From positions 4,030,001 to 4,094,000 of the forward strand of contig NC_086119.1 of NCBI RefSeq assembly GCF_963921235.1: a stretch of 64,000 nt of DNA, in the 5' to 3' direction. Every line of letters starts with the position of its first letter. Within the stretch, counting starts at the first letter, position 1. Below the pieces are notes generated by a model, which was given only the letters and a program-made list of their open reading frames with translations, ran no database searches and was not told where the DNA came from. The translations under genes and the position numbers were made by a program. Positions 3,424-39,503 of the stretch are shown piece by piece. The DNA comes from Mobula hypostoma (Eukaryota).

Positions 3424-3532
3424 GACGTCCGCAGTCCGGCCGAATATGAAGTCAGTCACTTGGAGGGAGCCGTTCGCGTCGACCCAGAGACCACCGACAT
3501 GGAGAGGGTGGTGGAGGAGCTGGGTCTGGCAG
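3424..3532 (+). CDS. Rhodanese-domain gene A, coding exon 2
   Basis: CTCTCGTTACAG acceptor; encodes DVRSPAEYEVSHLEGAVRVD (rhodanese DVR..EY..H..GA motif); 109 nt; GT donor at 3533. Confidence 0.92.
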
Positions 3533-3536
3533 GTAA

Positions 3537-5240
3537 TCTTGCCCGACAAATCTGTTAGAATTATTTTGTGGAAATGATATACAGGATAGACACAGGAGAG
3601 TCAGTGGATGTTGCTTATGTGGATTTTCCGACGGTCTTTGACAAGAGCTGCTCATGAGGCCGCTTGGTATTACAGGAGGGATAAAAGCCTGGCTGACTGG
3701 CAGGAGGCAAAGAGTGGGGAAATGGGGGCTTTTCTGGTTGGCTCCTAGTGACTAGTGGTGTTCTGCTGGGGTTGGAGTTGGGACCATTTGGATGATAGAA
3801 TTGATGTCTTTGTGGCCAAGTTTGCTGACTATATGAAGATAGGTGGAGGGGCAGGTAGTGTTGAGGAAACAGGGTGTCTACAGACAGACTTAGACAGATT
3901 GGGAGAATGGGTGAGGAAGTGGCAGGTGGAATATAGTGTAGGGAAGTGTACGCTCAGGCACTTTGGGAGAAGGAATAGAGGGTAGACTGTTTTCTAAACA
4001 GGGAGAAAAGTCAAAAATCAGAGGTGCAAAGGGACTTGGGAGTTCTCATGCAGGATTCCCTGAAAGTTAGCCTGCAGGTTGAGTCGGTGGAAGGCAAATG
4101 CAATGTTAGCATTCATTTCGGGAGGACTAGAATGTAGAGGAAAGGCTATGATGTCGAGGCTTTATAAGGCTCTGGCCTGACTGCACTTGGAGTATTGTGA
4201 GCAGTTTTGGGCCCCTTATCTTAAAAAAAACTGATGTGCTGGCATTGGTGAGGGTCCAGCGGATATTCACGAGAATGATCTCAGAAATGGACGGGTTAAT
4301 GTATGAGTGTTTGATGGCTCTGGGCCTATACAGAAACTGCAACACATATGCTGACTGCTGTGCTACTGGTTGGTGGACATAGGATTTTCTCAGGGGAGAC
4401 CCTGTCGAAGGGTTAAGTAGATGTAAAAGACAACAAGGGGACACCCCAGAGTGTTTGCCAACGACCTGACCTAACACTTTGAGCCAGTTTACAGTCTGAA
4501 CCTAAACAGAAAAATATTGAAAGTTTTTCCAACAAGTTACTGTTCCAGATCTTTGTCGTCTGTGGACCAGTAAGCCACATGTTGAAGATGGTTTAGTTTT
4601 ATTGATGAATCAGTAAATTAAGCCAGTTCAAGATCATAACCTGACATCTATCTATGTCATGGTGTCGAAGAATGGTGGTGGTGGTGGGGGGGGGGGTGGT
4701 TCTCATTGGAACCCATTGAATATTGAAAGTCTCAGATAGTCTGGATGTGGAGAGGATGTTTCCTATAGTGGGGGAGTCTAGGACCAGAGGACACAGATAG
4801 AGTGGATGTGGAGAGGATGTTTCCTATAGTGGGAGAGTCTAGGACTAGAGGACGCAGGTAGAGTGGATGTGGAGAGGATGTTTCCTATAGTGGGGGAGTC
4901 TAGGACCAGAGGACACAGATAGAGTGGGTGTGGAGAGGATGTTTCCTATAGTGGTTTAGTCTAGGATCAGAGGGATGCCCATCTATAATGAAGATGAGAA
5001 GGAATTCCTTTCGCCAGAGTGTGGTGAATCTGGAATTTATTGCCGCAGATGGCTGTGGATGGCATCATGGGGTATATTTAAGGCTGAGGTTGATAGGTTT
5101 TTGATTAGTCAGGGCATCAAAGGTTATGGGGAGAAGGCAGGAGAATGGGATTGAGAGGGATAATAAGTCAGCTGTGGTGGAATGGTGGAGCAGATTCGAT
5201 GGGTTGAATGGCCTAATTCTGTTCCTCTGTCTTCTGGTGT
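3537..5240 (+). mobile_element. Degenerate CR1 LINE fragments in intron 2 of gene A (interrupted ~4330-4700), including a 61-bp tandem expansion at 4735-4975
   Basis: RT motifs (VAKFADYMKIGG, LDRLGEW), CR1 C-terminal region and 3' UTR. Homology starts about 4 nt after the exon 2 donor. Confidence 0.85.
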
Positions 5241-6321
5241 AAGGAAAACTGATCTCAGACCTCTGCTGCCTTGTGGCTGTACCCATTCATGGGGAAGGCG
5301 TTGGCAGTAAATCCCGGGGAAAAATCTGGAGCCAGTTCCTCAGGCAGTCCTATGTTGAGTTCAATGCTGACTGGTAACTCCTGTGACACCACTGGTACCA
5401 AACTGTATCGGTCTCCAAACTGTTGGATTCAGCCTGCTCATGGACAATGGCTTCGTACTGTCCTGGATTGTGTATTACGTAGACAGCTGGGTCACCACAT
5501 CCATGGTCGATTCTGAGCAATGGGGGCCTCTAATCAAAGAGTCTGAGGTGTGTGGAACTCGAATGAACAGGCTTCTGGTTGATGCTTCAAGAAACAAATG
5601 GTTAAATGGAAGCTGCTGTTTCAGAGTAACACACACACAAAATGCTGGAGCAGTTCAGAAGATCAGGCAGCAATAAACAATCGACATATCAGATTGAGAC
5701 CCCTCAACAGGACTGATCCTGGTGGTTTGGGACTTCAGGCTCCTATACCTCCTGCCCGATGTGAGGAGTGAGAAGATGGCCTGGCCCGGAGGGTGGGGAT
5801 CTTTGATGATGGACGCTGCAATCTTGAGGCAGCATCTCCTGCAGATATCCCGATGGTGAGAGGGACGTGTCCGTGATGGACTGGGCACAAGTCCACTACT
5901 TTCTCCAGCTTTTTACAGTCTTCTGCATTTGGGTTGCTGTGATGCAACCAGTCAGGATACAACATTCAAGATTGTTTCTCGTCATTCTTCAGAGCATGAG
6001 TGTAAAGGAGAGCAAAATGATCATTACTCCAGATCCAGTGCAGCTTAAAAAAGCACAAAGAACCCAATAAATAGAAATATATAACATTACCTTCTATACA
6101 TTGATTGTATGACATAGCATACTGCTACTGTCAGTGTAACACACACAAAATGCTGGAGGAACTTGGCAGGTCAGGCAATATATAAGGAAGAATAAACAGC
6201 TGAAGTTTCAGGCCGAGACCCTTCATCAGGACTTGGTGCCGGGAAGTGCTTGCAGGGTGATGTGTGACTGGAAGTGCACTGTGAGCTGCCTAACCCTCTC
6301 TATGCTCTGTCTCTCCCACAG

Positions 6322-6581
6322 GCAGCACTGTGGTCTGTTACTGCACAGTTGGATATCACGCCTCCCAAATGGCACAGAAGCTCTCTGAGGTTTGGGCCAG
6401 GGACTCCAGTCCGAGTGTCCCGGTGATGCCGAAAGTTTACAACCTGGACGGGGGCTTACGGAAGTGGAGCCAGGAGAACAGGCCCATGGTGGACGGCAGT
6501 AACCGCCTGACCAGCCAGGTTCATCCCTACAGCCAGCTGTGGGACCAGCTGCTGGAAGCTGATTTCAAACCTCCAGAGTAA
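6322..6581 (+). CDS. Rhodanese-domain gene A, coding exon 3 (active-site loop CTVGYH)
   Basis: Pyrimidine tract plus CCCACAG acceptor, phase-compatible. Encodes VVCYCTVGYHAS...YNLDGGLRKW...VHPYSQLW, TAA stop; AATAAA at 6744-6749. Confidence 0.92.
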
Positions 6582-6789
6582 TGCCCACTCCCCGGCACCA
6601 GACTCCTGCAGACACCTCTGGGCACAACGCCACTCCTCCTGACACAACACCCACCACCACCCCCTCTTGGCATTCGCCCAGCTGGAGGGGTTTAGCACCT
6701 TGTACACACCTCATCATGTGTAACTTGTTAGGGGGTTGAAGAAAATAAAGAAAATGGCTTGTTTAATATTGCTGTGTCCTGTATTTTGA

Positions 6790-10000: not shown

Positions 10001-10199
10001 CCAGCACTTTATTGTATTCACAGCTGCTTTGATTGTTTGGACAATGCGTCAGACCCTGTGTGTACACAGAAATCCAAGTTACATCTTCTAACCTTGATTA
10101 TTAGTCCACAAATTTCACCTTGCCACAAATAGCTGCTGTGCAGGGCAGAAGAATCAGAATTGGAGATTGGTCTGGGATCATATATAATGGGTTCATCCC

Positions 10200-12330: not shown

Positions 12331-12602
12331 TCAGATTGGAGCCCTGAACTCGGGCTCCACCAGCTCAGCCCAGACCTTGTTGTAGGGGTGGACCAGGTGG
12401 GTGGGCTGCTCCTTGCCATCCACTATGGGTTTCCTCTCATTGGCCCACTTCGCCAGGCCTCCCTCCAGGTTGTAGACCACTGGGCAATGGTGCCCCGGCT
12501 GCTCAGGACCTGACGCCAGAGCCTGCTGCACTTTCTGAGCCATCTCCGAGCCGTGGTAACCCGCCGTGCAATAGCACACTACCTCTTTGTCCTTCAGATC
12601 GC
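12331..12602 (-). CDS. Rhodanese-domain gene B, coding exon 3 (active-site loop CTAGYH)
   Basis: TTGCAG acceptor, phase-compatible. Encodes GDLKDKEVVCYCTAGYHGS...YNLEGGLAKWANE...VHPYNKVW, TGA stop. 272 nt, same length as exon 3 of C. Confidence 0.9.
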
Positions 12603-14317: not shown

Positions 14318-16420
14318 GTCTGTTATTCTTTTACCTCAATGCACTGTGAAATGAGTTGATCTGCATCAATGGGGTGCACGACAAGTTTTTTCCTGCACCT
14401 CTGTATATGAGCCAATAAAAAACTTTGAGAAACTTTGAACTTTACTGTGCTCACGGACTTCTTCATCAAGTTATGGTATGGTTACACTGTTTGTAACTAC
14501 ATGTTATAATTATGTGGTTTTGTCAGTTTTTTCAGTCTTGGTTTGTCCTGTGTTTTGTGATATCGCACCGGAGGAAATAATGTATCATTTCTTAATGCAT
14601 GCATTACTAAATGACAATAAAAGAGGACTACGTATCTTCATAATCATAATCATAAAAAATAAATAACTGATTTCCCTCTAACCCAGTCCTGGTTGGGATA
14701 GGAGGTGGTGATGGGAGCTACGAGGACCTCTTTGCCTGGGACTATTACACCACTGAGCTCCAGGTGCAACCCAACAAACCTGGCACTTACAGTGTGGTAG
14801 TTACACACCCACCCAAGCACTAGAGATTTCTCCAGGACCCGCCTGCTGTTTACATCTGACTGCAGGCAGTTCCAGGGATGTCTGAGACGTGGTCTGCTAT
14901 CCACAACATCGTCCTGGCAGAGGGGCTGCGGGATGTCTGAAGCTGGAATCAGTCACCACAAGAGTCAAAGAGTCACACAGACTGGAAGGGGGTGCTCTTC
15001 CCTCCTTTACTTTCTTCCATGGCCTTCTGTCCTCTCCGATCAGACTCCCCCTTCCCCAGCCCTGTGTCAATCAACTTCCCAGCTCCCTGCTTCATCCCTC
15101 CTCCTTGAGGTTTCACCTATCACCTTGAGTTTCTCTCTCCTCTCCCCCACCTTTTAAATCTACTCCTCAGCCCTCTTCTCCAGTCCTGCCCGATACGGCG
15201 ACTGTACTGCTTTCCATAGATGCTGCCTGGCCTGCTGAGTCCCTCCAGCATTTTGTGTGTGTTGTTCCAACTGGTCCACGGTGACCAAGATTGCCACCTG
15301 AGCCCGTTCCATTTGCCCGCGTTTGCCCATATCTCTCTAAGCCAGGCATTCCCACCTTTTTTAAGCCGTGGAACAATACCAGTAAGCAAGGGCTCTGTGG
15401 ACTCCAGGCTGGGAACCCCTGCTCAGAAACTTTCCTGTCCAAACGTTTCAAATGCCGTTAATGTACCTGCCTCAACAACTTCTTCTGGCATCTCAGTCCA
15501 TATACTGACCACCCTCCGGGTGGAGATGTTGCCCTTTGGGTTCCTATTATCATAAGACATAGGCACATAATAAGGCCATTCCGCCCATCGAGTCTATGCC
15601 ATTCCATCATGGCTGATTTATTAACCTTCTCAACCCTATTCTCCTGTTTACTTCCCATAACCTTTGGTGCCCTGACTAATCAAGAACCTATCAACCTCCA
15701 CTTTAACATACACAATGACTCGGCGTCCACAGCTGCATGACAGTACAAAGTACAAAGTAAATTAAAATATTGCCATTCTGATCCGGGATGCAGTTTATCC
15801 CTGGTGGTACCCAACAGTCCCAGAACACCTTCCTGGTGTCCGTGGACACAGGGTGTTATTTTCCCCAGGATACGAGTGGTCTGAGGGGAGGGGTCACTGA
15901 CCCTTGTCCTGGACACTGCAGTCCTGCGAAACAGCCTCACCTACAGCAAGTCATAAGCTTGAGATTCTGCCGAGCAACACACACAAGATGCTGGAGGAAC
16001 TCAGCAGGTCAGGCAGCATCCATGGAAATGAACAAACAGTCGATGTTTCCGGCCACGACCCTTTATCAGGATTGGAAAGGAAAGTGGGGAGAGGGGAAGG
16101 AGTACAAATTGGCAGATGATGGGTGAGACCAGGTGAGGGGGAAGGTGGGTAGGGGAAGAGGGGATGAAGTGAGAAGCTGGGAGGTGATAGGTGAAAAAGA
16201 TAAAGGGCTGAAGAAGGAACCTGATAGGATAGGAGAGTGGACCATGGAAAGAAGAAAAGGAGGGGAAACAGAGGGAGGCGATGGACAGGTGAGAAGAAGA
16301 GAAGGGGGGCAATGGAATGAGAGGGAGTAGAGGAGGCCCTGGGAAAACATGCTTGTTGTGGATGGTATGTGTTATTCACAAACAGCTCAGTGTCCAGGCC
16401 AGGCTCCCGGTGGTCCCTAC

Positions 16421-16529
16421 CTGCCAGACCCAGCTCCTTCACCACCTTCTCCATGTCGGTGGTCTCTGGGTCGATGCGAACGGCTCCCTCCAAGTGACTG
16501 ACTTCATACTCGGCCGGACTGCGGACGTC
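16421..16529 (-). CDS. Rhodanese-domain gene B, coding exon 2
   Basis: CTCTCGTTACAG acceptor, DVRSPAEYEVSHLEGAVRIDPETTDMEKVVKELGLA, GTAGGG donor; 109 nt. Confidence 0.92.
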
Positions 16530-17199
16530 CTGTAACGAGAGGGAGACCCTGGTCTGTTGGCTTCACTCCCTGGGTGGAGCTTGCACGCTCTACCTGTGAC
16601 CGAGCGGGGAGGTGAGGGTTCTCCCACTCTGGGGAAGGGCTCCATCTCCTCTAACATCCCAGTGATGTGCAGGGTCGGTGGGTTAATGTTCCGTAGTCGC
16701 GGGGGAGGCGGGGGTACTGACACATGTGCGAGTAAGTCATAGTAGGAGAATGGGCCGGACAGGGTCACTGGGGTGGGCCGAATGACCTCCTGTACCCAAG
16801 GCAAAGGTGAGGACGTGGTACTGAGAATTGCCATCTGAACCCCATTAGGTGTTTATTTCACGGGGGAAAGTCCAGAGAAAGTGAGATTCCCAACAAGCAA
16901 GAATTTACAGTAAGACTGTTCTTGTTTGCACATATCTATGAAAAATATTCAGACTTATCAACCTAAACTGCCTTTGCTAGTATGCCAAGTTGTATGCACC
17001 ATGAGGATGAGCTTTGACCTGGCCAGGTTGCTAGGCAACACCTTCAAGCTACACTCAAAAGCAGATACATTGTGGGCCACTAGCCTTGGGAAGTGCCCAG
17101 AGACACAGCAGAGAAGTCAGTCAAACTCTCAGGGAGAGAAAAGGGGACTTTTGAAGTCCAAATAAAAATAATAAATAAAGAAGCGGGAAAATAGAGCAA

Positions 17200-19215: not shown

Positions 19216-19344
19216 GAGAGTTTGGGGGAGGATACGTTGTATATATCCCGGGTCATTTGCCAGCGCTGAGCTGCGGCCTGGGCGTTGGGCGGTTTAAGTT
19301 GCCCGGACCCGCTGCCCCATCGGGATCGGTCTGTCCGCGCTCAC

Positions 19345-19455
19345 CAACACTAGCAGCCGCTCCCGCTCCTCCCGAAGCAGCTTCTCCACAGCGTCCGAGC
19401 CCAGGTTCCGTACCGAAGGGAAGCGGTGCCGGATCCACTCGGTCACCGGCTCCAT
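19345..19455 (-). CDS. Rhodanese-domain gene B, coding exon 1; full CDS complement(join(12331..12602,16421..16529,19345..19455)), 163 aa
   Basis: ATG at 19455, MEPVTEWIRHRFPSVRNLGSDAVEKLLREERERLLVL, GTGAGC donor; 16 nt differences in 111 versus exon 1 of gene A. Confidence 0.9.
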
Positions 19456-21485
19456 GACGCAGCCCAGATCCCGGGACAAGACCCCACCTCCTGGACAAAC
19501 CCTCTCAACTGACCCCGCCCCCCACCCACCCTTTCTATTCCCTCAGAACCCGGCTTCTCCCATGACCAAAAGCCCCCAGCCCAACCCAATGCGACAGGTT
19601 CTGTGCACAGCAGGATCCCATGACAGTGAGGAACGGGGAATTGGTATGTGTCGGTGGTCCCAGGAGACCCACCCCCCACCCGGATATTCCCGTGCCAGCA
19701 AGGACGTGGGATGAAGAGGGCCGTACCTGTGACTGAAGAGCGCTTTCTCAGCTCCTACCCCCAGCGGAGGTACCAGGACCGGGTACCCAGGGACACCCCG
19801 AGCTAATCACTGTGACTCCCCACCCCACCCCCTCTCTGGCTCCTTGGTGTTGCCCTGAATGGTTCCAAAAGTACCCAATGCCTGTTCCACGAACAGCCCT
19901 GCACCTGTCAGACACGGTGCAGCTTTGAGTCCCGGATTCCAGAATGTCAGATGCCCAGCCTTTCCAGTTCGTGCATCGTTCCAATGTCATTGCTGTTGTA
20001 GGGGGAAGAATAGCAAAGGCTAATAACTAATAGATAGTGATGTGGATTGTTTTAATGTGATGATAACAGATAAAAGCAGAAATCTGGAATGCAAAAGCAA
20101 CAACACCCAAGTTTCAGCAAGTTCACTAATTATATTGTGCACCCATTGTTGTAATAGAAAATTGGATTTGCTATCAGACCTGTTTTATTCTATAATCAGG
20201 ACCTAGTTTGTTACTTAAACCCCCCTGTAGCAAAATGTTACTGGTAAACTCATCCATTGAGGTCAGCTTTCACAGGTCTCCTGGGCCACACCAGCTTTTA
20301 ACAAATCGTTCGTTATTTCAAACACCAATTCTGTTTGCTCTGATAATCCATTTCTCTCTCTACAGCTGCTGCCTGACCCACTTCTTCACATTCATGGTTA
20401 CTGCTGATCACAATGAAGAGGGAAACCGGGGGGGGGGGGGGGGGGTCATTTAACTGGTGGAATTGGTCCAAGCTAGTACAGGCTTGATAAGACAAATGGC
20501 CTCCAAAGGAAATCTGGAAGATATGAGTTTTGATTCTCACTCCTGCACCACAATCAGTTCCGTACCTGGTCAGTAAAGTTCAACAGATTTTATCATTCCA
20601 CCACAGATGGGCAGAGTCTCAACTGCCAAGATCCAGCATTCCCACATCCTGTTCCACACCCTCTCAACACCTCCACTAGTTTAAAACCCACACGCTTTCA
20701 TCAAAATTTGCTATGTCCCATAATGTTCTGTAGGGTTATATTAAAGGTGCCTGTATAAATGTGCAGTTAATGTAACGCACCCATCACCAGCGATCCCGGT
20801 TTAATTCCTGCCAGTGTCTGTAACAGTTTGCACATTCTCTCCATGACCACGTGGATTTCCTCCAGGTGCTCTGGTTTCCTCCCACAGTCCAAAAGTGTAG
20901 AGTTTAAAATCAGTAAGTTATGGACATGCTACGTTAGCACCAGAAGCGTGGTGACATTTGCGGGCTGTTCCCAGCACACCCTCAGAATGTGTTGGTTGTT
21001 GACACATTTCACTGTGTGGTTCAGTATGCATGTGACTAATAAAAGCTAAACTTTACAATATTATCTTCATAAGGTGGCCATTCACTTTCCCCCAGCATTT
21101 TGGCTGTGGCAGGTCTAGAACTGGAAATGATGTTGGTTTAGATGCAGAGTTTTGACCAAAAACACCAACAAGATCTCCCACCTCCATCCACAGAGGCTGC
21201 TTGACTTACAGAGATCCCCCAGTAGATTCCAGCCTCAGCAGTCTTGTTTCCATAAATTCCCACCCCTGCTGTAATTGATCACCTATTAATGAACCCTTGT
21301 CACTGTGAAAGTTTAACCCTGCTTGAAATTGCCCTTTCAAACACGCCTACTCACTTGTTTACACAACAAAGTAAGAGCTTTCAATGTCTGCAGGGACTGC
21401 AAAGACCAAGGTTACAAAAAATGAGGGCCAATGCTGCAATCCCGGCAACACACCAGTGCAGCGAGATTCCAGAGGCACTTTACTG

Positions 21486-24400
21486 CAGTCCCAGTACCTG
21501 GTGTTACAGTGACAGACCCGTCCCCACCGGTACCGTACCCCGGAGTTACACAGTGACATACCCGTCCCCACTGGTACCATACCCTGGCGTCATACAGTGA
21601 CAGACCCGTCCGCACCAGTCCCAGTACCTGGTGTTACAGTGACAGACCCGTCCCCACCGGTACCGTACCCCGGAGTTACACAGTGACAGACCCGTCCCCA
21701 CCAGTCCCGTACCCCGGAGTTATACAGTGACAGACCCGTCCCCACCGGTACCGTACCCCGGAGTTATACAGTGACAGACCCGACCCCACCGGTACCGTAC
21801 CCCGGAGTTATACAGTGACGGACCCGTCCCCACCGGTACCGTACCCCGGAGTTATACAGTGACAGACCCGTCCCCACTGGTACCATACCCTGGCGTTATA
21901 CAGTGACAGACCCGTCCCCACTGGTACCATACCCTGGCGTTATACAGTGACAGACCCGACCCCACTGGTACCATACCCTGGCGTTATACAGTGACAGACC
22001 CGTCCCCACCGGTACCGTACCCCGGAGTTATACAGTGACGGATCCGTCCGCACCGGTACCGTACCCCAGAGTTATACAGTGACGGACCCGTCCACACCGG
22101 TACCATACCCCGGTGTTATACAGTGACGGACCCGTCTGCACCAGTCCCAGTACCTGGTGTTACTGTGTCTGACCCGTCCCCACCGGTACCGTACCCCGGT
22201 GTGATACAGTGACAGACCCGTCCCCACCGGTACCGTACCCCGGTGTTATACAGTGACGGACCCGTCCACACCGGTACCGTACCCCGGTGTTATACAGTGA
22301 CGGACCCGTCTGCACCAGTCCCAGTACCTGGTGTTACTGTGTCTGACCCGTCCCCACCGGTACCGTACCCCGGTGTGATACAGTGACAGACCCGTCCCCA
22401 CCGGTACCGTACCCCGGCGTTACACAGTGACAGACCCGTCCCCACCAGTACCGTACCCCAGTGTTATACAGTGACAGACCCATCCCCACCGGTACCATAC
22501 TCCAGTGTTACACAGTGACAAACCCGTCCCCACCAGTACTGTACCCCGGTGTTACACAGTGACAGACCCGTCCGCACCAGTCCCAGTACCTGGTGTTACA
22601 GTGACTGACCCGTCCCCACCGGTACCGTACCCCGGCGTTATACAGTGACAGACCCGTCCCCACTGGTACCGTACCCTGGTGTTATACAGTGACAGACCTG
22701 TCCCCACCGGTACCGTACCCCGGTGTTACACAGTGACGGACCCGTCCCCACCGGTACCGTACCCTGGCGTTATACAGTGACGGACCCGTCCGCACCGGTA
22801 CCGTACCCCAGAGTTATACAGTGACGGACCCGTCCGCACCGGTACCGTACCCCAGAGTTATACAGTGACGGACCCGTCTGCACCAGTCCCAGTACCTGGT
22901 GTTACAGTGTCTGACCCGTCCCCACCGGTACCGTACTCCAGTGTTACACAGTGACTGACCCATCCCCACCGGTACCGTACCCCGGTGTTACACAGTGACA
23001 AACCCGTCCCCACCAGTACCGTACCCCGGTGTTACACAGTGACAGACCCGTCTCCACCGGTACCGTACTCCGGTGTTACACAGTGACTGACCCATCCCCA
23101 CCGGTACCGTACCCCGGTGTTACACAGTGACAAACCCGTCCCCACCAGTACCGTACCCCGGTGTTACACAGTGACAGACCCGTCCCCACCGGTACCGTAC
23201 TCCAGTGTTACACAGTGACTGACCCATCCCCACCGGTACCGTACCCCGGTGTTATACAGTGACAAACCCGTCCCCACCAGTACCGTACCCCGGTGTTACA
23301 CAGTGACAGACCCGTCTCCACCGGTACCGTACTCCGGTGTTACACAGTGACTGACCCATCCCCACCGGTACCGTACCCCGGTGTTACACAGTGACAAACC
23401 CGTCCCCACCAGTACCGTACCCCGGTGTTACACAGTGACAGACCCGTCTCCACCGGTACCGTACTCCAGTGTTACACAGTGACTGACCCATCCCCACCGG
23501 TACCGTACCCCGGTGTTACACAGTGACAGACCCGTCTCCACCGGTACCGTACTCCGGTGTTATACAGTGACAGACCCGTCCCCACCGGTAACGTACCCCG
23601 GTGTTATACAGTGAGACCCATCACCACTGGTACCGCACCCCGGTGTTGTACAGTGACAGACCCGTCCCCACCGGTACCGTACCCCGGTGTTATACAGTGA
23701 GACCCATCACCACCGGTACCGCACCCCGGTGTTGTACAGTGACAGACCCATCCCCACCGGTACCGTACCCCGGTGTTGTACAGTGACAGACCCGTCCCCA
23801 CCGGTACCGTACCCCGGTGTTATACAGTGACGGACCCGTCCACACCGGTACCGTACCCCGGTGTTATACAGTGACGGACCCGTCTGCACCAGTCCCAGTA
23901 CCTGGTGTTACTGTGTCTGACCCGTCCCCACCGGTACCGTACCCCGGTGTGATACAGTGACAGACCCGTCCCCACCGGTACCGTACCCCGGCGTTACACA
24001 GTGACAGACCCGTCCCCACCAGTACCGTACCCCAGTGTTATACAGTGACAGACCCATCCCCACCGGTACCATACTCCAGTGTTACACAGTGACAAACCCG
24101 TCCCCACCAGTACTGTACCCCGGTGTTACACAGTGACAGACCCGTCCGCACCAGTCCCAGTACCTGGTGTTACAGTGACTGACCCGTCCCCACCGGTACC
24201 GTACCCCGGCGTTATACAGTGACAGACCCGTCCCCACTGGTACCGTACCCTGGTGTTATACAGTGACAGACCTGTCCCCACCGGTACCGTACCCCGGTGT
24301 TACACAGTGACGGACCCGTCCCCACCGGTACCGTACCCTGGCGTTATACAGTGACGGACCCGTCCGCACCGGTACCGTACCCCAGAGTTATACAGTGACG

Positions 24401-25480
24401 GACCCGTCCGCACCGGTACCGTACCCCAGAGTTATACAGTGACGGACCCGTCTGCACCAGTCCCAGTACCTGGTGTTACAGTGTCTGACCCGTCCCCACC
24501 GGTACCGTACTCCAGTGTTACACAGTGACTGACCCATCCCCACCGGTACCGTACCCCGGTGTTACACAGTGACAAACCCGTCCCCACCAGTACCGTACCC
24601 CGGTGTTACACAGTGACAGACCCGTCTCCACCGGTACCGTACTCCGGTGTTACACAGTGACTGACCCATCCCCACCGGTACCGTACCCCGGTGTTACACA
24701 GTGACAAACCCGTCCCCACCAGTACCGTACCCCGGTGTTACACAGTGACAGACCCGTCCCCACCGGTACCGTACTCCAGTGTTACACAGTGACTGACCCA
24801 TCCCCACCGGTACCGTACCCCGGTGTTATACAGTGACAAACCCGTCCCCACCAGTACCGTACCCCGGTGTTACACAGTGACAGACCCGTCTCCACCGGTA
24901 CCGTACTCCGGTGTTACACAGTGACTGACCCATCCCCACCGGTACCGTACCCCGGTGTTACACAGTGACAAACCCGTCCCCACCAGTACCGTACCCCGGT
25001 GTTACACAGTGACAGACCCGTCTCCACCGGTACCGTACTCCAGTGTTACACAGTGACTGACCCATCCCCACCGGTACCGTACCCCGGTGTTACACAGTGA
25101 CAGACCCGTCTCCACCGGTACCGTACTCCGGTGTTATACAGTGACAGACCCGTCCCCACCGGTAACGTACCCCGGTGTTATACAGTGAGACCCATCACCA
25201 CTGGTACCGCACCCCGGTGTTGTACAGTGACAGACCCGTCCCCACCGGTACCGTACCCCGGTGTTATACAGTGAGACCCATCACCACCGGTACCGCACCC
25301 CGGTGTTGTACAGTGACAGACCCATCCCCACCGGTACCGTACCCCGGTGTTGTACAGTGACAGACCCGTCCCCACCGGTACCGTACCCCGGTGTTGTACA
25401 GTGACAGACCCGTCCCCACCGGTACCGTACCCCGGTGTTATACATTGACAGACCTGTCCCCACCGGTACTGTACACCAGG
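21486..25480 (+). repeat. 44-bp CpG-rich minisatellite, ~90 copies, with a 1574-bp higher-order duplication
   Basis: Unit GTTATACAGTGACAGACCCGTCCCCACCGGTACCGTACCCCGGT. The variant pattern at 22261 recurs at 23835, and identical ORFs occur at 23601 and 25175. Confidence 0.97.
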
Positions 25481-25871: not shown

Positions 25872-26064
25872 TCACTTGCCAGACGCGTTGTTCTGCTGCT
25901 GTTGCTCTGCCAGGGCCTGCTGCAGCCTGACCCGCTTGCGGGAGTAGTGCTGCCAGTGGAGAAGCTGCTGCTCGTCGATGAACTTGGCACACTGCGCGTT
26001 CACCAGCTCCTTGCGGAAGTGCTCGTACTGCAGCAGCTCCAGCATGTGCAGGCACTGGGGGTAT
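25872..26064 (-). CDS. MED31: Mediator subunit 31, exon 4
   Basis: YPQCLHMLELLQYEHFRKELVNAQCAKFIDEQQLLHWQHYSRKRVRLQQALAEQQQQNNASGK*, nearly identical to the vertebrate MED31 C-terminus; CTGCAG acceptor. Confidence 0.98.
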
Positions 26065-27019
26065 CTGCAGGGCAAGAGACAGAGAGTGAGAGAACTAGTG
26101 GAGAAACACGAGGGCCAGTGACCCCACACCCCAGGTCGGCAAGGGTCGGTTGGAGACACGAGGGGCGCGGTTCAAAGTCCTGTGATCAATGAGCCCTGGT
26201 CGTAGACCGGTGAGTCTGGAGGTTAAGGCCAGAAGGTCGAAGCCCCTGGGTCGGCATGTCTGGAAGTTGGAGGCCCGATGTCTGCAAGTCTGGGCAAGGA
26301 ACTGGAGGCCAGACATCTGCGTGTCTGAGAGAGCATAACATATAGGAGCAGAAGTAGGCCATTCAGCCCATCGAGTCTCTGCCATTCAGTCATGGGCTGA
26401 TTCAATTCTTCCAGTCATCCCCATTCCCCTGCCTTCTCCCCATACCCTTCGATGCCCTGGCTAATCAAGATAAGGCCGGGGCCAAGAGTCCTGTGGTTGG
26501 AGGCCTGTCTGTGTGAGTGGTTTAGAGGGTGGGAAAGGGCGTTGTTTTGGTGTTGTTCTGCTGAACCTTGTGGACATGCTATATTGGCACCAGACTGTGT
26601 GGCAGCAATTGCAGACTGCCCCTAGCACATTCTCAGCGCAAACACCACATTTCACATTATGCTTCCATGTACACGTAACAAACAAATGAATCTGAAGAAT
26701 AATTCAGTGTCTCAAGAAGGCGGATTCATCACTAAAGACCCTCACCACCCAGGACATGCCGTCTTCTCATTACTATCATTGGAGAGGAGGTCCAGGAGCC
26801 TGAAGACACACACTCATGAACAGCACAGTGGTGTAGTGGTTACAGCGCCAGTGGCCCGGGTTCGATTCCTGACGCTGTCTGTACATTCTCCTCGTAACCG
26901 CATGGCTTTCCTCCCAGTTATTGTACAGTGACAGACCCTAACGGTTAGTAGGTTCATTGGTCACATGGAGGTAACTGGGCAGTGTGGGCTCGTTGAGCCA
27001 GAAAGGGCTATTACAATAA

Positions 27020-27830
27020 TACATAGGAACAGAATTAGCCCACTCAGCCCATCAAGTCTGCTCTGCTATTTCATTATGACTGATTTATCATCCCTCTTAG
27101 CCCCATTCTCCTGTCTCCTGACACCCTGACTAATCAACCTCTGCTTTAATATACCAATGACATGGCCTCCACAGCTGCCTGTGGCAATGAATTCCATAGA
27201 TTTAATACCCTCTGGCTAAAGAAATTCCTCATCTCTGTTCTAAACAGATGTCCCTCAATTCTGAATCTGTGTCCTCTGGTGCTAGACTCCCCACTATAGG
27301 AAACATCCTCTCCACATCCACTCTATCTGTGTCCTCTGGTCCTAGACTCCCCCACTATAGGAAACATCCTCTCCACATCCACTCTATCTGTGTCCTCTGG
27401 TCCTAGACTCCCCCACTATAGGAAACATCCTCTCCACATCCACTCTATCTGTGCCCTCTGGTCCTAGACTCCCCACTATAGGAAACATCCTCTCCATACC
27501 CACTCTGTGACCTCTGGTCCTAGACTCCCCCACTATAGGAAATGTCTTCTCCACATCCACTCTATCTGTGCCCTCTGGTCCTAGACTCACCCACTATAGG
27601 AAACATCCTCTCCACATCCACTCTATCTGTGCCCTCTGGTCCTAGACTCCCCCACTATAGGAAACATCCTCTCCACATCCATTCTATCTGTGTCCTCTGG
27701 TCCTAGACTCCCCCACTATAGGAAACATCCTCTCCACATCCATTCTATCTGTGTCCTCTGGTCCTAGACTCCCCCACTATAGGAAATGTCTTCTCCATAT
27801 CCAGTCTGTCTGGGCCTTTCACCATTTGAT
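27020..27830 (-). repeat. CR1 3' fragment containing a ~61-bp minisatellite (~9 copies, 27265-27800)
   Basis: Unit encodes DRVDVERMFPIVGESRTRGH on the minus strand and is flanked by CR1 3' sequence. Confidence 0.9.
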
Positions 27831-28179
27831 GCCATGCTGTATCTCTAGTTTCTTTTCCTCTGCCATCCAAATCCATGAACACTAACTTCTTATTTCTTTA
27901 TTTACAATATTTAGTCATTTGTAATTTATAGTAATTTTTATGTATTGTGTTGTACTGCTGCTGCAAAAGAACAATTTCACAACACATCTCAGTGATAAAA
28001 ACCTGATTCTAGATATGAACTTCCCAGGGCAATGTACAGTGAAGAAGGCGGTGCCTCAGGTTATCTATTTTTACGGTAATTTATATTACATCGCTCTGTA
28101 CTGCTGCTGCAAAACAATGCATTTTACGTTATACGCCAGTGATATGAAACCCAAATCCGACACTGGCCGGGGCACTTAC

Positions 28180-28276
28180 TTCAGGTACTTGGCGTACTCC
28201 GGTTCTTTCCAGTACAGAAGGTACTTGAAGTAATTGACGAACGTGCGGTCTCTGAAGTAGCCTCGCTGCGCCAGGA
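28180..28276 (-). CDS. MED31: Mediator subunit 31, exon 3
   Basis: (F)LAQRGYFRDRTFVNYFKYLLYWKEPEYAKYL(K); 97 nt; CAG/GTAAGT boundaries. Confidence 0.97.
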
Positions 28277-30252
28277 CTGCGGCACCAAGACAAAATAATT
28301 CAATTAGATGCCAGCGACAAGGCTACCCAGACCACCACACCAATAGACAAGGCACACCTCCATAACCAGTGCTGGCTCTCTAATCCCTCAGCCACAACCC
28401 CAACTCCCACCACTCTTTAACGCCATTCCCCTACCTGTCCCTCTGCATTGCCACCCCTCCAACAATCCCTTACAGGAGCTACTCCCAACCACCCAGCACG
28501 GTCCTTACCACCGTTCACACCCAGCAAGCACTCCTGTATCGCCCAGTGAGCCTCCGGGGCCCCTCTCTGAGACCCTGCCATTCACCGATCACACCGCGTC
28601 GTCAGTCAAACTCTCAAATGCCGAGGAGGAGCGTACTGGAGTGAGACGGATCAGCAGCAACCTTGCACTCAACATCAGCAAGAACAAGAAATAGACGGGA
28701 CTTCAGGAAGGGAACACACACTGGCCCTCATCGAGGGGCCAGGGGTGGAAAGGCTGAGTAGTTTAACCAATTTCCCCTGGGATCAATAAAGTATGACTAT
28801 GACTATGTCTGGTTTCAAGTAGCTGGGCATCAACATCTCAGAGGATCTATCAAGGGCCGAAGGTCTATCAGGGGCCGTTGGTGTAACCATGAAGAAGGCA
28901 CAACAGCGGCTCTGCTTCATTAGGAGCTTGAGGAGACTTGGTATGTTACCAAATACTCTGACAAATCTCCGTAAATGTCCGGTGGAAGGCATTCTGACTC
29001 GTTGCATCACAGTCTGATTTGGAGGCTCCAATGCACAGCATCGGAATGAGCTGCAGAGGATTGCAGACTGAATCAGCTCTATCGTGGGCACAACCCTCCC
29101 CAGCACCAAGGACATCTTCTAAAGGCGGTGCCTCAAGACAGCAGCCACCACTAGGAACCCTCAGCACCCAGGGCAAGCCCTCTCCTCATCAGTACCATCG
29201 AGGATGAAAGGCCCACATGCAATGCTTTGGGAACAGCTTCTTCCCCTCCACCATCAGATTTCTGAATGGACAACGAACCCATGTACACTACCTCACTTCT
29301 TTTTCTTTCTTTTGCTCTCTTTTTGCACAATTAATTTAATTTATATATATATATATATATATTTCATTGTAATTTTTAGTTTGTTATGTATTGGAATTTA
29401 CTGCAGTTGCAAAACAACATATTTCATGACATGCCAATCATATTAAACCTGATATCATCGTGGTGTGTGGACTGGGCTCTGTAGTTCACGTTATGATGTG
29501 TTTCTGGTCTCTCCCTTTTTAATTGCTAATTTGTACGATTTTCATTGGGACAGACTGGCTCTGTGGCCTGCAGTTAAACAACACAGTGCTCAGCTGAACT
29601 GAACATTCCTAGGCTGGTTCAAGGTTTTGATGTTTTATATTTTGTGTGTTTTTTGCTCACCTTTGCCATTTGCACAATTTTTTCTCTTTTTTTTGCACAA
29701 TGGGTGTTTGATGTTTTCTTTGAATGGGCTCTTTGTTTCACGGCTGACCGTGGAAAGTCGAATCTCATGGTTATATGCTACATATACTTTGATAATAAAT
29801 GTACTTTGACTTTGAATCTTTGATTCTGGCTTAATTGTGCAAACTTGGAGGCAGAATTTAGTCAGCTTCCATCATCAGGGACCCCCACCACCGAGGACTG
29901 GCCCTCTTCTCACTGCTACCATCAGGGAGGAGGTACAGGAGCCTGAAGGTACACAGTCAACGATTCAGGAACAGCTTCTTCCCCTCCGCCATCAGAGTTT
30001 TGAATGGTCTGTGAACCCATGAACACAAACTAGTTATTCAGCTTTCGTAATTTACGGTGTTTTTATATGTATTGCATTGTACTGCTGCCACCAATATCAC
30101 ATCCTATGTCAGTGCTAATAAACCAGATTCCGATATCCTACACCAGCTCCCCTGGTCTAAGCCTCCAGCTGAATCCCGTTGCACTGCCTTGCGCAGTCTG
30201 CCTGGCACTGTTCCCGAGGTCAGCAACGCCGGCAGCTACCCAGGATACTCAC

Positions 30253-30327
30253 AGTTCAGGTAGTTTGGGTTTGCCAGACACTGAACAAACTCCAGCTCCA
30301 CCTGGAAACGCAGCTTTGCCTGTTCCT
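30253..30327 (-). CDS. MED31: Mediator subunit 31, exon 2
   Basis: (E)EQAKLRFQVELEFVQCLANPNYLN; 75 nt; CAG/GTGAGT boundaries. Confidence 0.97.
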
Positions 30328-32519
30328 CTGATGATGGATAATGGGGCGGGGGGGGGGGAATGGTGGAAAACACAGGTTAATTCTCACTGTTCAAAAACTG
30401 ACAAAGTGTGATACTCAAACATCATCTCACAAAACATAGAACAGTACAGCAGTACAGAGTACAGGCCCTTTGGCCCATGACGTTTTTACTTACTCTAAGA
30501 TCAATCTAACCCCTCCCTCCCACACAGCCCTCCATTTTTCCATCATCCATATGCCCATCTAAGAGTCTCTTAGATGCCTTTAATGTATCTGCCTCCATGC
30601 CCCCAAACCTCCTCTCCACCTCCCAGTAAATCTTCCTGGGGATCTCCTGCACCTTGCCCCACAACCTCGGGGACCTGCTCCTGACATCCGCCACTGTCTG
30701 CGTTCTCTCCGTGACTGCGTGGGTACCTCCTGGGTGTTCCAGTTTCATCCCTCATTCCAAAGACGCGGGAGCTTCTGGGTTAATTGACCACTGCAATTTA
30801 CCCTCCAGCTGGGTTAATGGCAGAGTCTGTGTGAACTTGATGGGAATGTGGGGACAATTAAAGCAAATGCATGGCTAATGGTTGGCACTAACCCAGGGGT
30901 CAGTAAGACCAAAGAACTGATTGTGGACCTCAGAAAGAGTAAGAAGAAGGAACACACACTGGTTCTCATCGAGGGATCAGAAATGGAAAGAATGAGCAAT
31001 TTCAAGTTCCTAAGTGTCAACATCTCTGCACCCAACATATTAATGCAGCTTCAAAGAAGATACATCAGCAGCTATATTTCATTAGGAGTTTGAGAACATC
31101 TTCGGAAACAGCTCTGTTTCTATCTTTAATATCTCTTTTTTTCCTTTTCAGGGTTCTTTTGAAGACCCTGACCTGGAGTTACACGCTGACTTCAGTTCTT
31201 TGCAGAAATGGGACCCGCTCTCAGGGCCTCACGACCGGCAACTTTTCGATATGCCAAGGACGTGGCCTGGAAGACTAGCACACCTTCAGGGTGCCGGATT
31301 TTGGTGGCTCTGGAGATGGGCTGATTCGAGGCCGGTACTGCTGCCTGATGTGTCGCGGGAGTGTATGGAAGATCGAAAGCAGCGAGCTGGCTGCTGGCTG
31401 TGTGCCTAGAGACCCGAGTTCTTTGGGCACAAAGCTCCGGAAAATCGACGCAAGACTTTTAACTCCATAAATTGGCGAGTTGTTTTGTTATGCCGCCCCT
31501 CTCGCTGTGAAATGGGGACACCTATTTTTCCCTTATTAGGGAGAGAGAGAGAGCCTGTGGAATGTTGAATTACCGGGTGAACGAGTAGTGCAAGTCTGTG
31601 TCTTTATTGATGCTTCGCTGCACACTTGAGTGCTCGGTGGAGGGGGGGGTGCTTTTTTGCTGGTGGGGGAGGGAGGGGGTTGTTGCTTTGCTGCTGTTTA
31701 TGCTTGGGAGGGGGGAGTTGGGGGTCTTTGGGGTTCTAACATTTAACTGTCATTTATTCCTCTGCTTTCGTGGATGTTTGCGAAGTAAAAGAATTTCAGG
31801 ATGTATATTGTATTCATATATACAGTGTGTGTGTTTTTTTTATATATATATATATATACACACACACTTACTGTAATTCACAGTTTCTTTCTCTATTATT
31901 ATGTGTTGCATTTACTGCTGCCGCAAAGACGACAAATTTCACAACAAATGCTGGTGATGTTAAACCTGATTCTGATTCAGGTGGGGGCGGGGGATGCTAA
32001 ACCCTAATACACTTTATTATTTCTTAATTTATTTGTGGTTATATTAGTTAGTGTATTGTGTGTGAGCTATATGTACAGTGTTTAGCGTCTTGATCCGGAA
32101 ATGAATCTCAGGGTTATATATATGGTGACATTGATGCACTTTGGTAATAAATTTATTTTGAACTTTTTCTTTAGTGAACTGGAAAATTGCACATCATGAA
32201 AAGGCCGATAAGAATGGCGATAATTTCTTTGGAACAGAGGACTATAAGGAAACTTTGTCGAAATATATAAAATTATGAACGACCTGGATTCAGTGAGCTT
32301 ACAGGAAGAATTAATTTGACACCAGAGTGTGTGGCAACACCTGCAGGCTACTCTTAGCACCTGCCTGGGTATCTTGGTTGTTAACCCCAATGATTCATTT
32401 CACTGAACGTCTCCATGTCTGTGAGATACATAAGCATAAATCTTGAATATATCCCTTTACAGATCTATCACATTCAGATATATCCCTTTACAGATTTAAT
32501 TCTCACAAGTACATTGAAA

Positions 32520-35460: not shown

Positions 35461-35479
35461 GCATTTGCATTAGTGCTGC

Positions 35480-36719: not shown

Positions 36720-37090
36720 AACTGGACCCCGACTTCCGCCCCGTGCATTTGCTCGCAGCTCCCACTTCCGCCCCTCTTAGCCGCCCGGCGATTGGCGCAG
36801 CCGGTCACGTAACGAACACATCACCATTACCAGTCTCCAAAGTATTCGGGGCCGCCGCCATTCTCCCTTCGTTACGCCACGGACATAAACCAGAAGAAGC
36901 CGTTTCGCGTCCCCAGCACTAATAGTCGGTGATCACAGGTACGATTTTCCGCACGTTAATCGATGTAATCGACACAGCAGACGAGGAATCAGCCCCCCGC
37001 CTCAACCCGTTCACCGTCTCCGCAAGCAACCGAAGGAAGTGACGAAGACAAGCAGACACTGCCCCCCACCGGAATGGAGGGGAAACGGCA
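36720..37090. promoter_or_regulatory. CpG-rich bidirectional promoter shared by MED31 (-) and rhodanese gene C (+)
   Basis: High CpG density; ETS-type ACTTCCG (~36732, ~36764) and GGAAGT (~37035); GC boxes; ATTGG at 36791; YY1-type AATGGCGGC over the MED31 ATG; divergent genes on each side. Confidence 0.75.
36831..36861 (-). CDS. MED31: Mediator subunit 31, exon 1; full CDS complement(join(25872..26064,28180..28276,30253..30327,36831..36861)), 131 aa
   Basis: ATGGCGGCGGCCCCGAATACTTTGGAGACTG|GTAATG encodes MAAAPNTLET; phase 1 matches exon 2; total CDS 396 nt. Confidence 0.92.
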
Positions 37091-37534
37091 CGATATCGCC
37101 TCAGGGCTAGAGGACCGCCGGTATGGCCTCCTGACTGCCGGAAGACCGGTGCTGCCGCTCCCTGTCTTCAGGAGGACCGGTGCTGCCGCTCCCTGTCTTC
37201 AGGAGGGCTGGTGGTGCCGCGCTCTGTCTGCTGGAGGACCGGCGGTGCTACCCCCCCGGTCAGTGGGAGGACCGGTGGTGCTGCCCCCTGTCTGTGGGAG
37301 GACCGGTGGTGCTGCCCCCTGTCCGTGGGAGGACTGGTGTGCTGTCCCCGTCTGCCTGAATGGAAGACCAGTGGTGTTGTGTTCACTGGCCCGACTCTGG
37401 CCCCTCCTGGTTCACCTCTGTGAGCTGTTCCTTCTGGATAACCGCTTTTCCTGACGTCCTCTTTCCTGTGTGCTGACAGGTGGTTTTGGAAGATCCCGGA
37501 TCACTGTGAACCCCAGATCATCCCACCAGCAAGG

Positions 37535-37645
37535 ATGAACCCTGTAATCTGGTGGATTCGTACCAGCTTTCAGTCAGTGCAGGACCTCGAGTCCAACCAC
37601 CTACTGGAACGGCTGAAACAGAGCCGGAACCAGGTGTTGCTGCTG
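37535..37645 (+). CDS. Rhodanese-domain gene C, first coding exon; full CDS join(37535..37645,39395..39503,41148..41419), 163 aa
   Basis: MNPVIWWIRTSFQSVQDLESNHLLERLKQSRNQVLLL, 37 codons as in A and B, GTGAGA donor. An upstream acceptor at 37478-37479 suggests a 5' noncoding exon. Confidence 0.88.
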
Positions 37646-38452
37646 GTGAGAGGCCCTGAGCAATTCCTTCCTCCTCCTTCCCGTAGCTGCCGGATTGTCT
37701 CTGGAGATTGTTGGGAATATGGGAGCGGCAGGGATAATTAGATAACTGTGTTCACTGGGCCACAGAGTGAGATATCATTGAAACAGTAGACCATACGACA
37801 TAGGAGCAGAATTAGGCCATTCAGCCCATCGAGTCTGCTCTGTTGTTCCATCATGACTGATTTATTATTCCTCTCAACACCATTCTCCAGTCTTCTTTCC
37901 ATAACTTTTGAACTGCTAACTAATCAAGAACCTGTCAACCTCTGCTTAAAATATACTCAATGATTTGGCCTCCACAGCTCCATCAGCCTCTGACAAAAGA
38001 AATTCCTCCTCATCTCTGATTTAAAGGAAAATCCCTCAATTCTGAGGCTCTTCCCCATTATCCTAGACTCCCGCTATAGGAAACAGTTCTCTCCACATCC
38101 AGTCTATCTAGACCTTCCAATATTGCAAAGGTAATTCAGGCCCTTTGGCCCAACTGGTCAACACAGGCCACAGCTGGTTCATAATCCTCCATGAACCTCT
38201 TAAATGTTGCAATTGGACCCACCTTGACCACTTCCTGGGACAAAAGGTACTTGGTGAAGGGTCTGAGAGAAAATTTACAAGGATGTGGCCGGGACTTGAG
38301 GACCTCAGTTAAAGGAAAAGGTTGAATAGGTTAGGACGTTATTCCCTGGAGAGCAGGAGGATGAGGAGAGATTCACAGATGTATTCAAAATTATGAGGGG
38401 TACAGATAGGGTAAATGGAGGCAGCATTTTCCACTGAGGTTGGGTGAGACCT

Positions 38453-38580
38453 CACCAAATACCCTGTATCACTGATACGGTCACATCACCAAATACCCTG
38501 TATCACTGATACAGTTGCATCACCAAATACTCTGTATCACTGATACAGTTACCTTACCAAATACCCTGTATCACTGATAG
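38453..38580. repeat. 34-bp tandem repeat (~4 copies) with internal palindrome TGTATCA-C-TGATACA
   Basis: CACCAAATAC recurs at 38453, 38487 and 38521. Confidence 0.85.
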
Positions 38581-38599
38581 AGTGATGCTCTCTTTATAC

Positions 38600-39350
38600 C
38601 ATCCTGTCATGCACTCCCAGGGTCAGACACAGGGTAAAGCTCTCTCCACACCGTCCCATCACACACTCCCGGGGTCAGACACAGAGTGAAACTCCCTCCA
38701 CACCATCGCATCACACGCTCCCGGGGTCAGACACAGAGTGAAGCTCCCTCCACATCGTCCCATCACACAATCCCGGGGTCAGACACAGAGTGAAGCTCCC
38801 TCCACACCATCCCATCACATACTCCCAGGGTCAGACACAGAGTGAAGCTCCCTCCACACCGTCCCATCACACACTCCCAGGGTCAGACACAGAGTGAAAC
38901 TCCCTCCACACCGTCCCATCACACACTCCCGGGGTCAGACACAGAGTGAAGCTCCCTCTACCCTGTCCCATCACACACTCCCGGGGTCAGACACAGAGTG
39001 AAGCTCCCTCCATACCGTCCCATTACACACTCCCGGGGTCAGACACAGAGTGAAGCTCCCTCCGCACCGTCCCTTCACACACTCCCGGGGTCAGACACAG
39101 AGTGAAGCTCCCTCTACCCCGTCCCATCACACACTCCCGGGGTCAGACACAGAGTGAAGCTCCCTCCACACCATCCCAACACACACTCCCAGGGTCAGAT
39201 ACAGTGTGAAGCTCCCTCTACCCCGTCCCATCACACACTCCCGGGGTCAGACACAGAGTGAAGCTCCCTCCACACCATCCCAACACACACTCCCAGGGTC
39301 AGATACAGTGTGAAGCTCCCTCCTCACCGTCCCATCACACACTCCTGGGC
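38600..39350. repeat. 52-bp minisatellite, ~14 copies
   Basis: Unit CCGTCCCATCACACACTCCCGGGGTCAGACACAGAGTGAAGCTCCCTCCACA. Confidence 0.95.
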
Positions 39351-39394
39351 CAAGGATAATACATCAAACATGATTCCTATTCCACTCGTTACAG

Positions 39395-39503
39395 GACGTC
39401 CGCAGTCCGGCTGAATATGAAGTCAGTCACTTGGAGGGAGCCGTTCGCGTTGACTCAGAGACCACCGACATGGAGAAGACAGTGAAGGAGCTGGGTCTGG
39501 CAG
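39395..39503 (+). CDS. Rhodanese-domain gene C, coding exon 2
   Basis: CTCGTTACAG acceptor, DVRSPAEYEVSHLEGAVRVDSETTDMEKTVKELGLA, GTAGGG donor; 109 nt. Confidence 0.92.

Follow-up and report, generated by a model that had tools for sequence, protein, structure and literature searches.

How can one small exon remain nearly identical in three linked genes when much of their remaining coding sequence has diverged? The question is raised by a 64-kb window of DNA from the devil ray Mobula hypostoma (the whole stretch analysed, 64,000 nucleotides), which carries three linked single-domain rhodanese genes, here termed A, B, and C, with three coding exons each. The exon concerned is coding exon 2, 109 nucleotides (nt) long, located at 3424..3532 (+) in gene A, where RNA joints mark both ends, and, by sequence comparison, at 16421..16529 (-) in gene B and 39395..39503 (+) in gene C; copy B is inverted relative to A and C. 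The most probable answer, with an estimated probability of roughly 0.85, is that exon 2 has been homogenised by recurrent short-tract interlocus gene conversion since before the split between sharks and rays.

The gene models were obtained by tblastn, splice-site inspection, and translation. All introns of A, B, and C are GT..AG, and the three genes agree in the position and phase of each intron. In gene A, coding exon 1 occupies 2609..2719 (+; 37 codons, defined by an open reading frame (ORF) and a GT donor), and coding exon 3 occupies 6322..6581 (+), encoding the catalytic loop CTVGYH, the C-terminal part, and the stop. RNA joints connect these exons to exon 2 at 2718>3423 (runs X5 and X13) and at 3529>6319, both GT..AG. 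Gene B has coding exon 1 at 19345..19455 (-), located by tblastn and translation, and coding exon 3 at 12331..12602 (-), with the catalytic loop CTAGYH and the stop. In gene C, coding exon 1 was placed from the sequence at 37535..37645 (+), and coding exon 3, with the catalytic loop CTLGYR and the stop, lies at 41148..41419 (+); the assembled C protein is 100% identical to a Mobula hypostoma NCBI protein (P0001).

Within Mobula, 4/109 nt of exon 2 differ between A and B, and 8/109 nt differ in each of the A-C and B-C comparisons, exactly as had been counted in a preceding sequence-only reading of this DNA. Synonymous differences amount to 1.0 for A-B, 2.8 for A-C, and 3.8 for B-C, and the synonymous divergence (dS, Nei-Gojobori) of exon 2 is 0.04, 0.12, and 0.17 for the three paralog pairs. 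By the same method, exon 1 has a dS of 0.23 for A-B and of 1.6-1.7 for A or B against C, and exon 3 is saturated in its first half and ranges from 0.68 to 1.02 in its second half. The synonymous deficit of exon 2 relative to the remaining coding sequence is significant for each pair (Fisher P = 6e-6 to 2e-5), and the deficit of differences at all sites is stronger still (Fisher P <= 1e-10). In exon 1, A and C have 30% of residues in common (11/37), and the last 47 codons of B and C carry 15.5 synonymous differences; the earlier figures of 11/37 and of about 15 differences over the last ~48 codons were therefore reproduced.

The similarity also includes the bases adjoining the splice sites. The window contains exactly three occurrences of the acceptor decamer CTCGTTACAG (0.03 expected by chance), one immediately 5' of each exon 2 copy, and two of the 11-mer following the donor, GTAGGGACCAC, which adjoin the 3' ends of exon 2 in B and C. 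Both had been described in the sequence-only reading as common to these copies, and the exact window counts agree. A GENECONV-style scan uses polymorphic sites only and is blind to a block identical in all three copies; exon 2 was therefore tested by Fisher tests and by cross-species permutations. Applied to the Mobula coding sequences, the maximal-segment permutation gave P = 1e-4 per pair, indicating a mosaic that is non-random along the gene, and the scan singled out exons 1-2 for A-B and the 3' part of exon 3 for B-C.

For the cross-species comparison, 32 proteins were aligned and cut at exon borders, among them 30 elasmobranch proteins from 16 genera. The homology searches had yielded proteins of A, B, and C type from 15 elasmobranch genera besides Mobula, and further members from Callorhinchus and a crocodile; the 10 species with at least two paralogs provide 20 within-species paralog pairs. 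Exon 2 identity is 0.965 between paralogs within species, compared with 0.745 for the same paralog between species, an excess with a permutation P of 0.0002 per paralog pair. Different paralogs compared between species reach 0.749, against 0.745 for the same paralog, showing that paralog identity carries no signal in exon 2. In the first half of exon 3, the corresponding values are 0.42 for paralogs within species and 0.61 for the same paralog between species. Exon 2 copies are identical in Pristis (three copies), Scyliorhinus (three), and Stegostoma (two), and are 0-3 residues apart in Heterodontus, Heptranchias, Rhinoraja, Hemitrygon, Narcine, and Chiloscyllium. Species-specific exon 2 replacements are common to all paralogs of a species, as with EQVVRELGPA in Pristis and EYQ...NMGELVKTLGLE in Scyliorhinus, each present in all three copies.

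Tree reconstruction separates the two exons in the same manner. On the exon 2 maximum-likelihood tree, the species label changes 9 times, the minimum for 10 species, and the paralog label 16 times; on the exon 3 maximum-likelihood tree, the paralog label changes twice, again the minimum, and the species label 21 times. In approximately unbiased (AU) tests, neither a C clade (p = 1e-52) nor an A clade (p = 0.003) is compatible with the exon 2 data, and species clades are rejected for exon 3 (Mobula p = 1e-37, Pristis p = 9e-7). Clustering of exon 2 by species and of exon 3 by paralog had been predicted for conversion by the sequence-only reading, and both are borne out by label changes and AU tests alike. 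The A, B, and C clades each hold sharks as well as rays; the triplication thus predates the shark-ray split, and homogenisation has continued independently in each lineage since that split.

Nucleotide comparisons outside Mobula were made with Chiloscyllium, Rhincodon, and skate transcript contigs. In Chiloscyllium punctatum, B and C lie on separate genomic contigs with different upstream introns, and their exon 2 copies differ at 4/109 nt. They remain alike for about 108 nt of intron 2, with 76/80 matches over the initial 80, and their upstream limit of identity is at -17. The B orthologs of Chiloscyllium and Rhincodon are alignable along both introns, as expected of orthologs. In nucleotide trees, the exon 2 copies cluster according to lineage (Chiloscyllium B+C 91/86; skates 97/96) and those of exon 3 according to paralog (B clade 90/93). 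Since synonymous and non-coding sites are homogenised as well, protein-level selection cannot explain the pattern. The sequence-only reading had reached the same position, which is reinforced by the low exon 2 dS together with the intronic identity, to +108 in Chiloscyllium and in intron 1 of Mobula A and B. The concerted pattern, reaching synonymous and intronic sites, is present in every elasmobranch lineage sampled and is absent from the part of exon 3 that codes for the catalytic loop Cys-x-x-Gly-x-(Arg/His), its first half.

The edges of the homogenised tract were located in Mobula by blastn and local alignment. The A-C block spans 3411..3535 (+), with its partner at 39382-39506, and extends from -13 to +3 around exon 2, and the B-C block (16406-16542 versus 39382-39518) extends from -13 to +15. 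Both have 92.7-92.8% identity, and beyond them blastn finds no alignable sequence. Between A and B, the end of intron 1 of A (3274..3423, +; partner 16530-16682) is alignable at about 70% identity, with 35/40 matches adjoining the exon, and this similarity of ~150 nt 5' of exon 2 is read as an older or rarer, wider tract.

Further blocks are shared by pairs of genes. An A-B block covers exon 1 and the first 75 nt of intron 1 (2599..2794 (+), partner 19269-19465); its intron part, with 68/75 matches (91%), is more alike than the exon, with 95/111 (86%), which points to a DNA-level process. At the protein level, exon 1 identity between A and B is 0.89 within species versus 0.66 between species (P = 0.0014), and in Pristis and Heterodontus the exon 1 proteins of A and B do not differ. 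By blastn, C (41274..41419, +) and B (12331-12476) are 81% identical over the 3' half of exon 3, and B-C protein identity there is 0.75 within species versus 0.71 between species (P = 0.004). This excess is clearest in Heptranchias and the orectolobiform sharks, and the tract is read as weak and old. In the first half of exon 3, no pair among the 20 within-species pairs shows a within-species excess. Among the blocks, exon 2 alone is common to all three genes, and only the catalytic-loop half of exon 3 has never taken part in an exchange. The proposal of the sequence-only reading that conversion is confined to exon 2 stands in this three-way sense, but not as a strict restriction to the exon: the tract runs to +108 of intron 2 in Chiloscyllium, and pairwise tracts exist over exon 1 (A-B), the 3' half of exon 3 (B-C), and the ~150 nt upstream of exon 2 (A-B).

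Tandem repeats lie close to exon 2 of gene C. In intron 1, the final part is taken up by a 52-bp array of 14 copies (38612..39349) that stops about 45 nt short of exon 2; upstream of the tract, it leaves C no sequence homologous to A or B. Most of intron 2 is made up of a 27-bp array (29 copies, 40248-41045) and a 67-bp array (39647-39874), and exon 2 of C is an island between these satellites and the 52-bp array of intron 1.

A mechanism consistent with these observations would begin with A, B, and C as linked rhodanese paralogs that were already distinct before sharks and rays diverged. The 109-bp exon 2, with a few to about 100 flanking intron bases, would have been repeatedly overwritten between paralogs by non-allelic conversion, including the inverted copy B and copy C, located about 20 kb off across MED31, and the outcome would be concerted evolution of exon 2 within each species. 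Gene conversion is preferred because crossing-over would delete or invert the interval, yet synteny is conserved; we infer that the process is short-tract non-allelic gene conversion. The tract may be self-sustaining, with exon 2 as the sole homology block remaining and with adjoining introns so full of unrelated repeats that a heteroduplex would be unable to extend outward; the tract edges probably follow the remaining homology. The paralog-specific exons could escape through divergence below the needed homology, through selective removal of converted alleles, or through both. Protection by selection was the proposal of the sequence-only reading, which also suggested that the inverted orientation of B may aid the exchange. 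Conversion would be episodic, the Mobula copies having presumably gained their dS of 0.04-0.17 since the last events, and because this divergence is shared with a sister species, such events appear to be rare on the time scale of speciation.

Several points weigh against this interpretation. Eight of the 10 multi-paralog species are known from annotated proteins only, and the Pristis protein P0020 is labelled as an isoform and could in principle physically share exons with its neighbour. Within-species nucleotide comparison covers Mobula and Chiloscyllium only, plus a skate pair on a possibly chimeric contig. The upstream edge lies at -12 to -18 in both DNA species, a stretch that splice-acceptor selection would conserve too. 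No conversion event is seen directly, and the assembled contigs offer neither a polymorphic converted allele nor donor/recipient polarity. A homology block of ~125-230 bp is short for efficient conversion according to reports from mammalian cells. The restriction of the tract, finally, may be due either to selection or to loss of homology.

This last point leads to an alternative in which selection sets both the persistence and the limits of the exchange. The exon-2 module would have to match in all three enzymes, for example to serve a common docking partner, homogenised alleles would be favoured as in paired immune receptors, and conversions into the catalytic-loop exon would be purged. Such a role is in keeping with the fixed paralog-diagnostic residues in the first half of exon 3, a stretch without homogenisation in any of the 20 within-species pairs, with the homogenisation of exon 2 among all three genes in every lineage where the remaining tracts are pairwise only, and with the analogous selected cases of Siglec-11/16 (PMC5701461) and the CEACAMs (PMC2832619). 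Exon 2 nevertheless varies freely between species (74.5% identity), so no particular sequence is required, and the differences inside it are mostly non-synonymous (3/4 in Mobula A-B and 3/4 in Chiloscyllium B-C), unlike the expectation under selection for identity. A neutral homology-limited island predicts the same pattern, and the argument for selection draws on the sequence pattern. Selection in this role is considered unlikely, and to a similar degree it is doubtful that the exon-2 island is actively kept, whether because selection requires the three enzymes to carry an identical module, as a common docking surface, or because the island itself contains a sequence that initiates recombination. 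If true, active maintenance would account for concerted evolution of so small a block (~125 bp) at three loci, which has gone on in all shark and ray lineages from a time preceding their split.

Other explanations dispense with exchange altogether. The low synonymous divergence within Mobula and the acceptor decamer common to the copies could reflect an overlapping element, such as a splicing enhancer, an RNA structure, or an embedded RNA gene, that freezes synonymous sites. However, when the same paralog is compared between Mobula and Chiloscyllium, exon 2 has a dS of 0.56-0.87. Its synonymous sites can thus change freely, and nucleotide-level constraint is refuted, together with the synonymous conservation between distant species that the sequence-only reading had named as a counter-case. 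Species-specific amino-acid and synonymous states common to the paralogs, the extension of identity into intron 2 of Chiloscyllium, and an Rfam scan of the whole window that returned no RNA family also argue against such an element, whose involvement is highly improbable. An artefact, through polishing cross-talk, collapsed copies, or annotation pipelines that reuse one exon across gene models, might be suspected from the short-read DNA contigs that break inside exon 2, from one Logan transcript contig that is a probable chimera of C exon 1 and B exon 3, and from the isoform label of Pristis P0020. The breaks are expected for shared 31-mers, and these contigs are uninformative on the exon 2 letters. 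Against an artefact stand three copies with unique flanks and 4-8 fixed differences, as well as the reads themselves. Contigs of four public runs were mapped on gene A, and RNA of both Mobula hypostoma and a sister species, ~2% diverged in introns, contains the exon 1-2 and exon 2-3 joints of A with GT..AG borders. A sister-species RNA contig shows 0 differences over 3448-3529, an interval that covers 3/4 of the A-B diagnostic sites and 7/8 of the A-C sites, and is joined to exon 3 of A; the paralog differences are therefore real and predate that species split. A separate C-type transcript has 7 differences over the exon and carries the exon-3 start of C. In the DNA run, word depth is 34 in exon 2 versus 11 in the unique flanks, about threefold. 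The separate contigs of Chiloscyllium B and C, the separate convergent gene models of Hemitrygon A and B, and the recurrence of the pattern in 10 independently assembled genomes complete this evidence, and the artefact against which the sequence-only reading had cautioned is improbable in the extreme. Just as remote is the idea that the paralogs were re-created, or exon 2 re-inserted recently, in each species by independent lineage-specific duplication or exon shuffling. It would account for the grouping of exon 2 by species, but in exons 1 and 3 the sequences cluster by paralog, each clade uniting sharks with rays, the gene order with MED31 is conserved, and exon 2 occupies the same intron positions and phases.

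Recurrent short-tract conversion of exon 2 belongs to a known process, partial-gene conversion; what is notable is the small size of the island, the three participants (one inverted and one beyond another gene), and the persistence across sharks and rays. In Siglec-11/Siglec-16 (PMC5701461) and in the N-domain exons of the CEACAMs (PMC2832619), one domain of linked paralogs is homogenised by partial-gene conversion. As in those systems, linked paralogs exchange a part only, the rest remains paralog-specific, and the evidence consists of discordant trees per region. The likeness concerns mechanism only, as A, B, and C are small enzymes of predicted cytosolic type with single rhodanese domains and are not receptors. 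The present case also differs in having three participants, one of them inverted, and a tract made of a 109-bp exon with 15-110 nt of flank, and in occurring in all sampled shark and ray orders rather than in one mammalian clade. Globin and opsin tandem pairs are classical examples of concerted evolution by interlocus gene conversion. The A/B/C process resembles them in being short-tract and non-reciprocal, in erasing synonymous and intronic divergence, and in being stopped by divergence or by selection on key sites. In globins and opsins, most of the gene is homogenised and few sites escape, whereas in A, B, and C most of the gene escapes and one small exon is homogenised.

The locus can serve as a clean and very old natural experiment on the limits of gene conversion, with a catalytic-loop exon that has stayed paralog-specific throughout shark-ray history. 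It opens the questions of the minimum homology block length that sustains concerted evolution, of how tract edges shift between lineages (+3, +15, and +108 nt), and of whether selection or sequence divergence guards the functional differences between duplicates. It also carries a warning, as the shared exon will mislead per-gene trees, ortholog calls, and transcript assemblies of this rhodanese family, and one probably chimeric transcript contig was observed.

The proteins encoded by A, B, and C are 159-163 amino acids (aa) long, and each contains one rhodanese domain, PF00581 (E = 6.5e-16 to 1.9e-15; profile positions 3-101 or 7-101 of 102); the Pfam search of the three proteins returned no other family. 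In the AlphaFold2 model of C (pLDDT 91), exon 1 accounts for an N-terminal helix followed by a short strand, a second helix, and the larger part of the first core strand. Residues 38-73, encoded by exon 2, complete that strand and form helix 42-47, the SHLEGA turn, and helix 63-69; exon 3 codes for the strand VVCYC, the catalytic loop, a long helix, a variable loop, and a conserved tail. The catalytic residue Cys85 is invariant in 40 aligned homologs, follows strand 80-84 in the model, and aligns with the YCxxGFRS loop of 6mxv. The catalytic loops are encoded at 6342-6359 in A, 12570-12553 in B, and 41180-41197 in C. Within the loop, an arginine is present in C (CT[VL]GYRS) and a histidine in both A (CTVG[YF]HAS) and B (CTAGYHGS) in every shark and ray examined; judged from these alignments, the Arg/His exchange is a fixed and ancient predicted active-site difference between the paralogs.

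On this basis, A, B, and C are predicted to be sulfurtransferase-like enzymes. They resemble solved single-domain rhodaneses (6mxv; yeast YOR285W, 3d1p) in having one domain of ~100 residues with the catalytic cysteine heading a six-residue loop, although the similarity is weak (best E = 9e-5). Unlike the solved structures, they have an N-terminal helix and a conserved C-terminal tail (…VHPY…W…L), and in paralogs A and B the loop arginine is replaced by histidine. Outside cartilaginous fishes, the relatives among the matches listed are a crocodile protein (40% identity) and proteins of corals, a chiton, and a choanoflagellate, with cyanobacterial and Gemmatimonadota rhodaneses on the bacterial side. 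No teleost or mammalian relative is among the matches listed by the protein homology searches, and the family may have been lost in several bony-vertebrate lineages. In the literature, no report was found of gene conversion in rhodanese genes or of this rhodanese family. The genes represent an undescribed animal rhodanese subfamily, found by these searches in cartilaginous fishes, a crocodile, and invertebrates.

Among the neighbouring features, MED31 lies between B and C on the minus strand (span 25875..30331), with coding exons at 30331-30254, 28274-28179, and 26066-25875 located by tblastn with the MED31 of locus L002. The annotated order in Hemitrygon akajei is A, convergent with B, then MED31, C, and an SLC13-type gene, and the order A/B/MED31/C is that of Mobula. 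A skate transcript contig, L005, contains over 1097-1573 (compared with 923-1426 of L002) a C-type exon 1, exon 2, and a B-type exon 3, downstream of the 5' end of MED31. As evidence of trans- or alternative splicing it was set aside as a probable de Bruijn chimera formed via the shared exon, and it was excluded as independent evidence; its C-type exon 1 is 1 nt from the C transcript, and it may represent a real hybrid transcript.

Starting gene A at an in-frame upstream ATG at 2555 (2555-2608) would lengthen the protein by 18 residues (MGVSSGRDLNRGWGRGCD). A near-identical N-terminal extension is part of the annotated Hemitrygon A protein (P0021), so the longer A start may be real. In gene C, a possible acceptor at ~37480, about 55 nt upstream of coding exon 1, suggests an untranslated first exon, and a 31-bp tandem repeat of 7 copies (37126-37355) is located just 5' of coding exon 1, in what is presumed to be a promoter region shared with MED31.

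Downstream of C, a minus-strand ORF at 54631-54912 encodes a membrane-transporter-like peptide (…ATATLFLPILASM…). Hemitrygon has an SLC13-type sodium/sulfate symporter gene annotated downstream of C, of which this ORF may be an exon. An ORF of 417 aa at 52731-53984 (+) carries reverse-transcriptase-like motifs (…FADD…) and probably represents part of a LINE; pieces related to it are found at 3755-3985, within intron 2 of A, and at other places in the window. A satellite with a 44-bp unit and more than 80 copies occupies 21417-25200, between B and the 3' end of MED31, and a short inverted block of the same repeat is present at the window start (70-400). A 61-bp tandem repeat family occurs at 27136-27918, 54957-55622, and 4714-4974, with members 90-93% alike, the last of these being inverted and situated within intron 2 of A.

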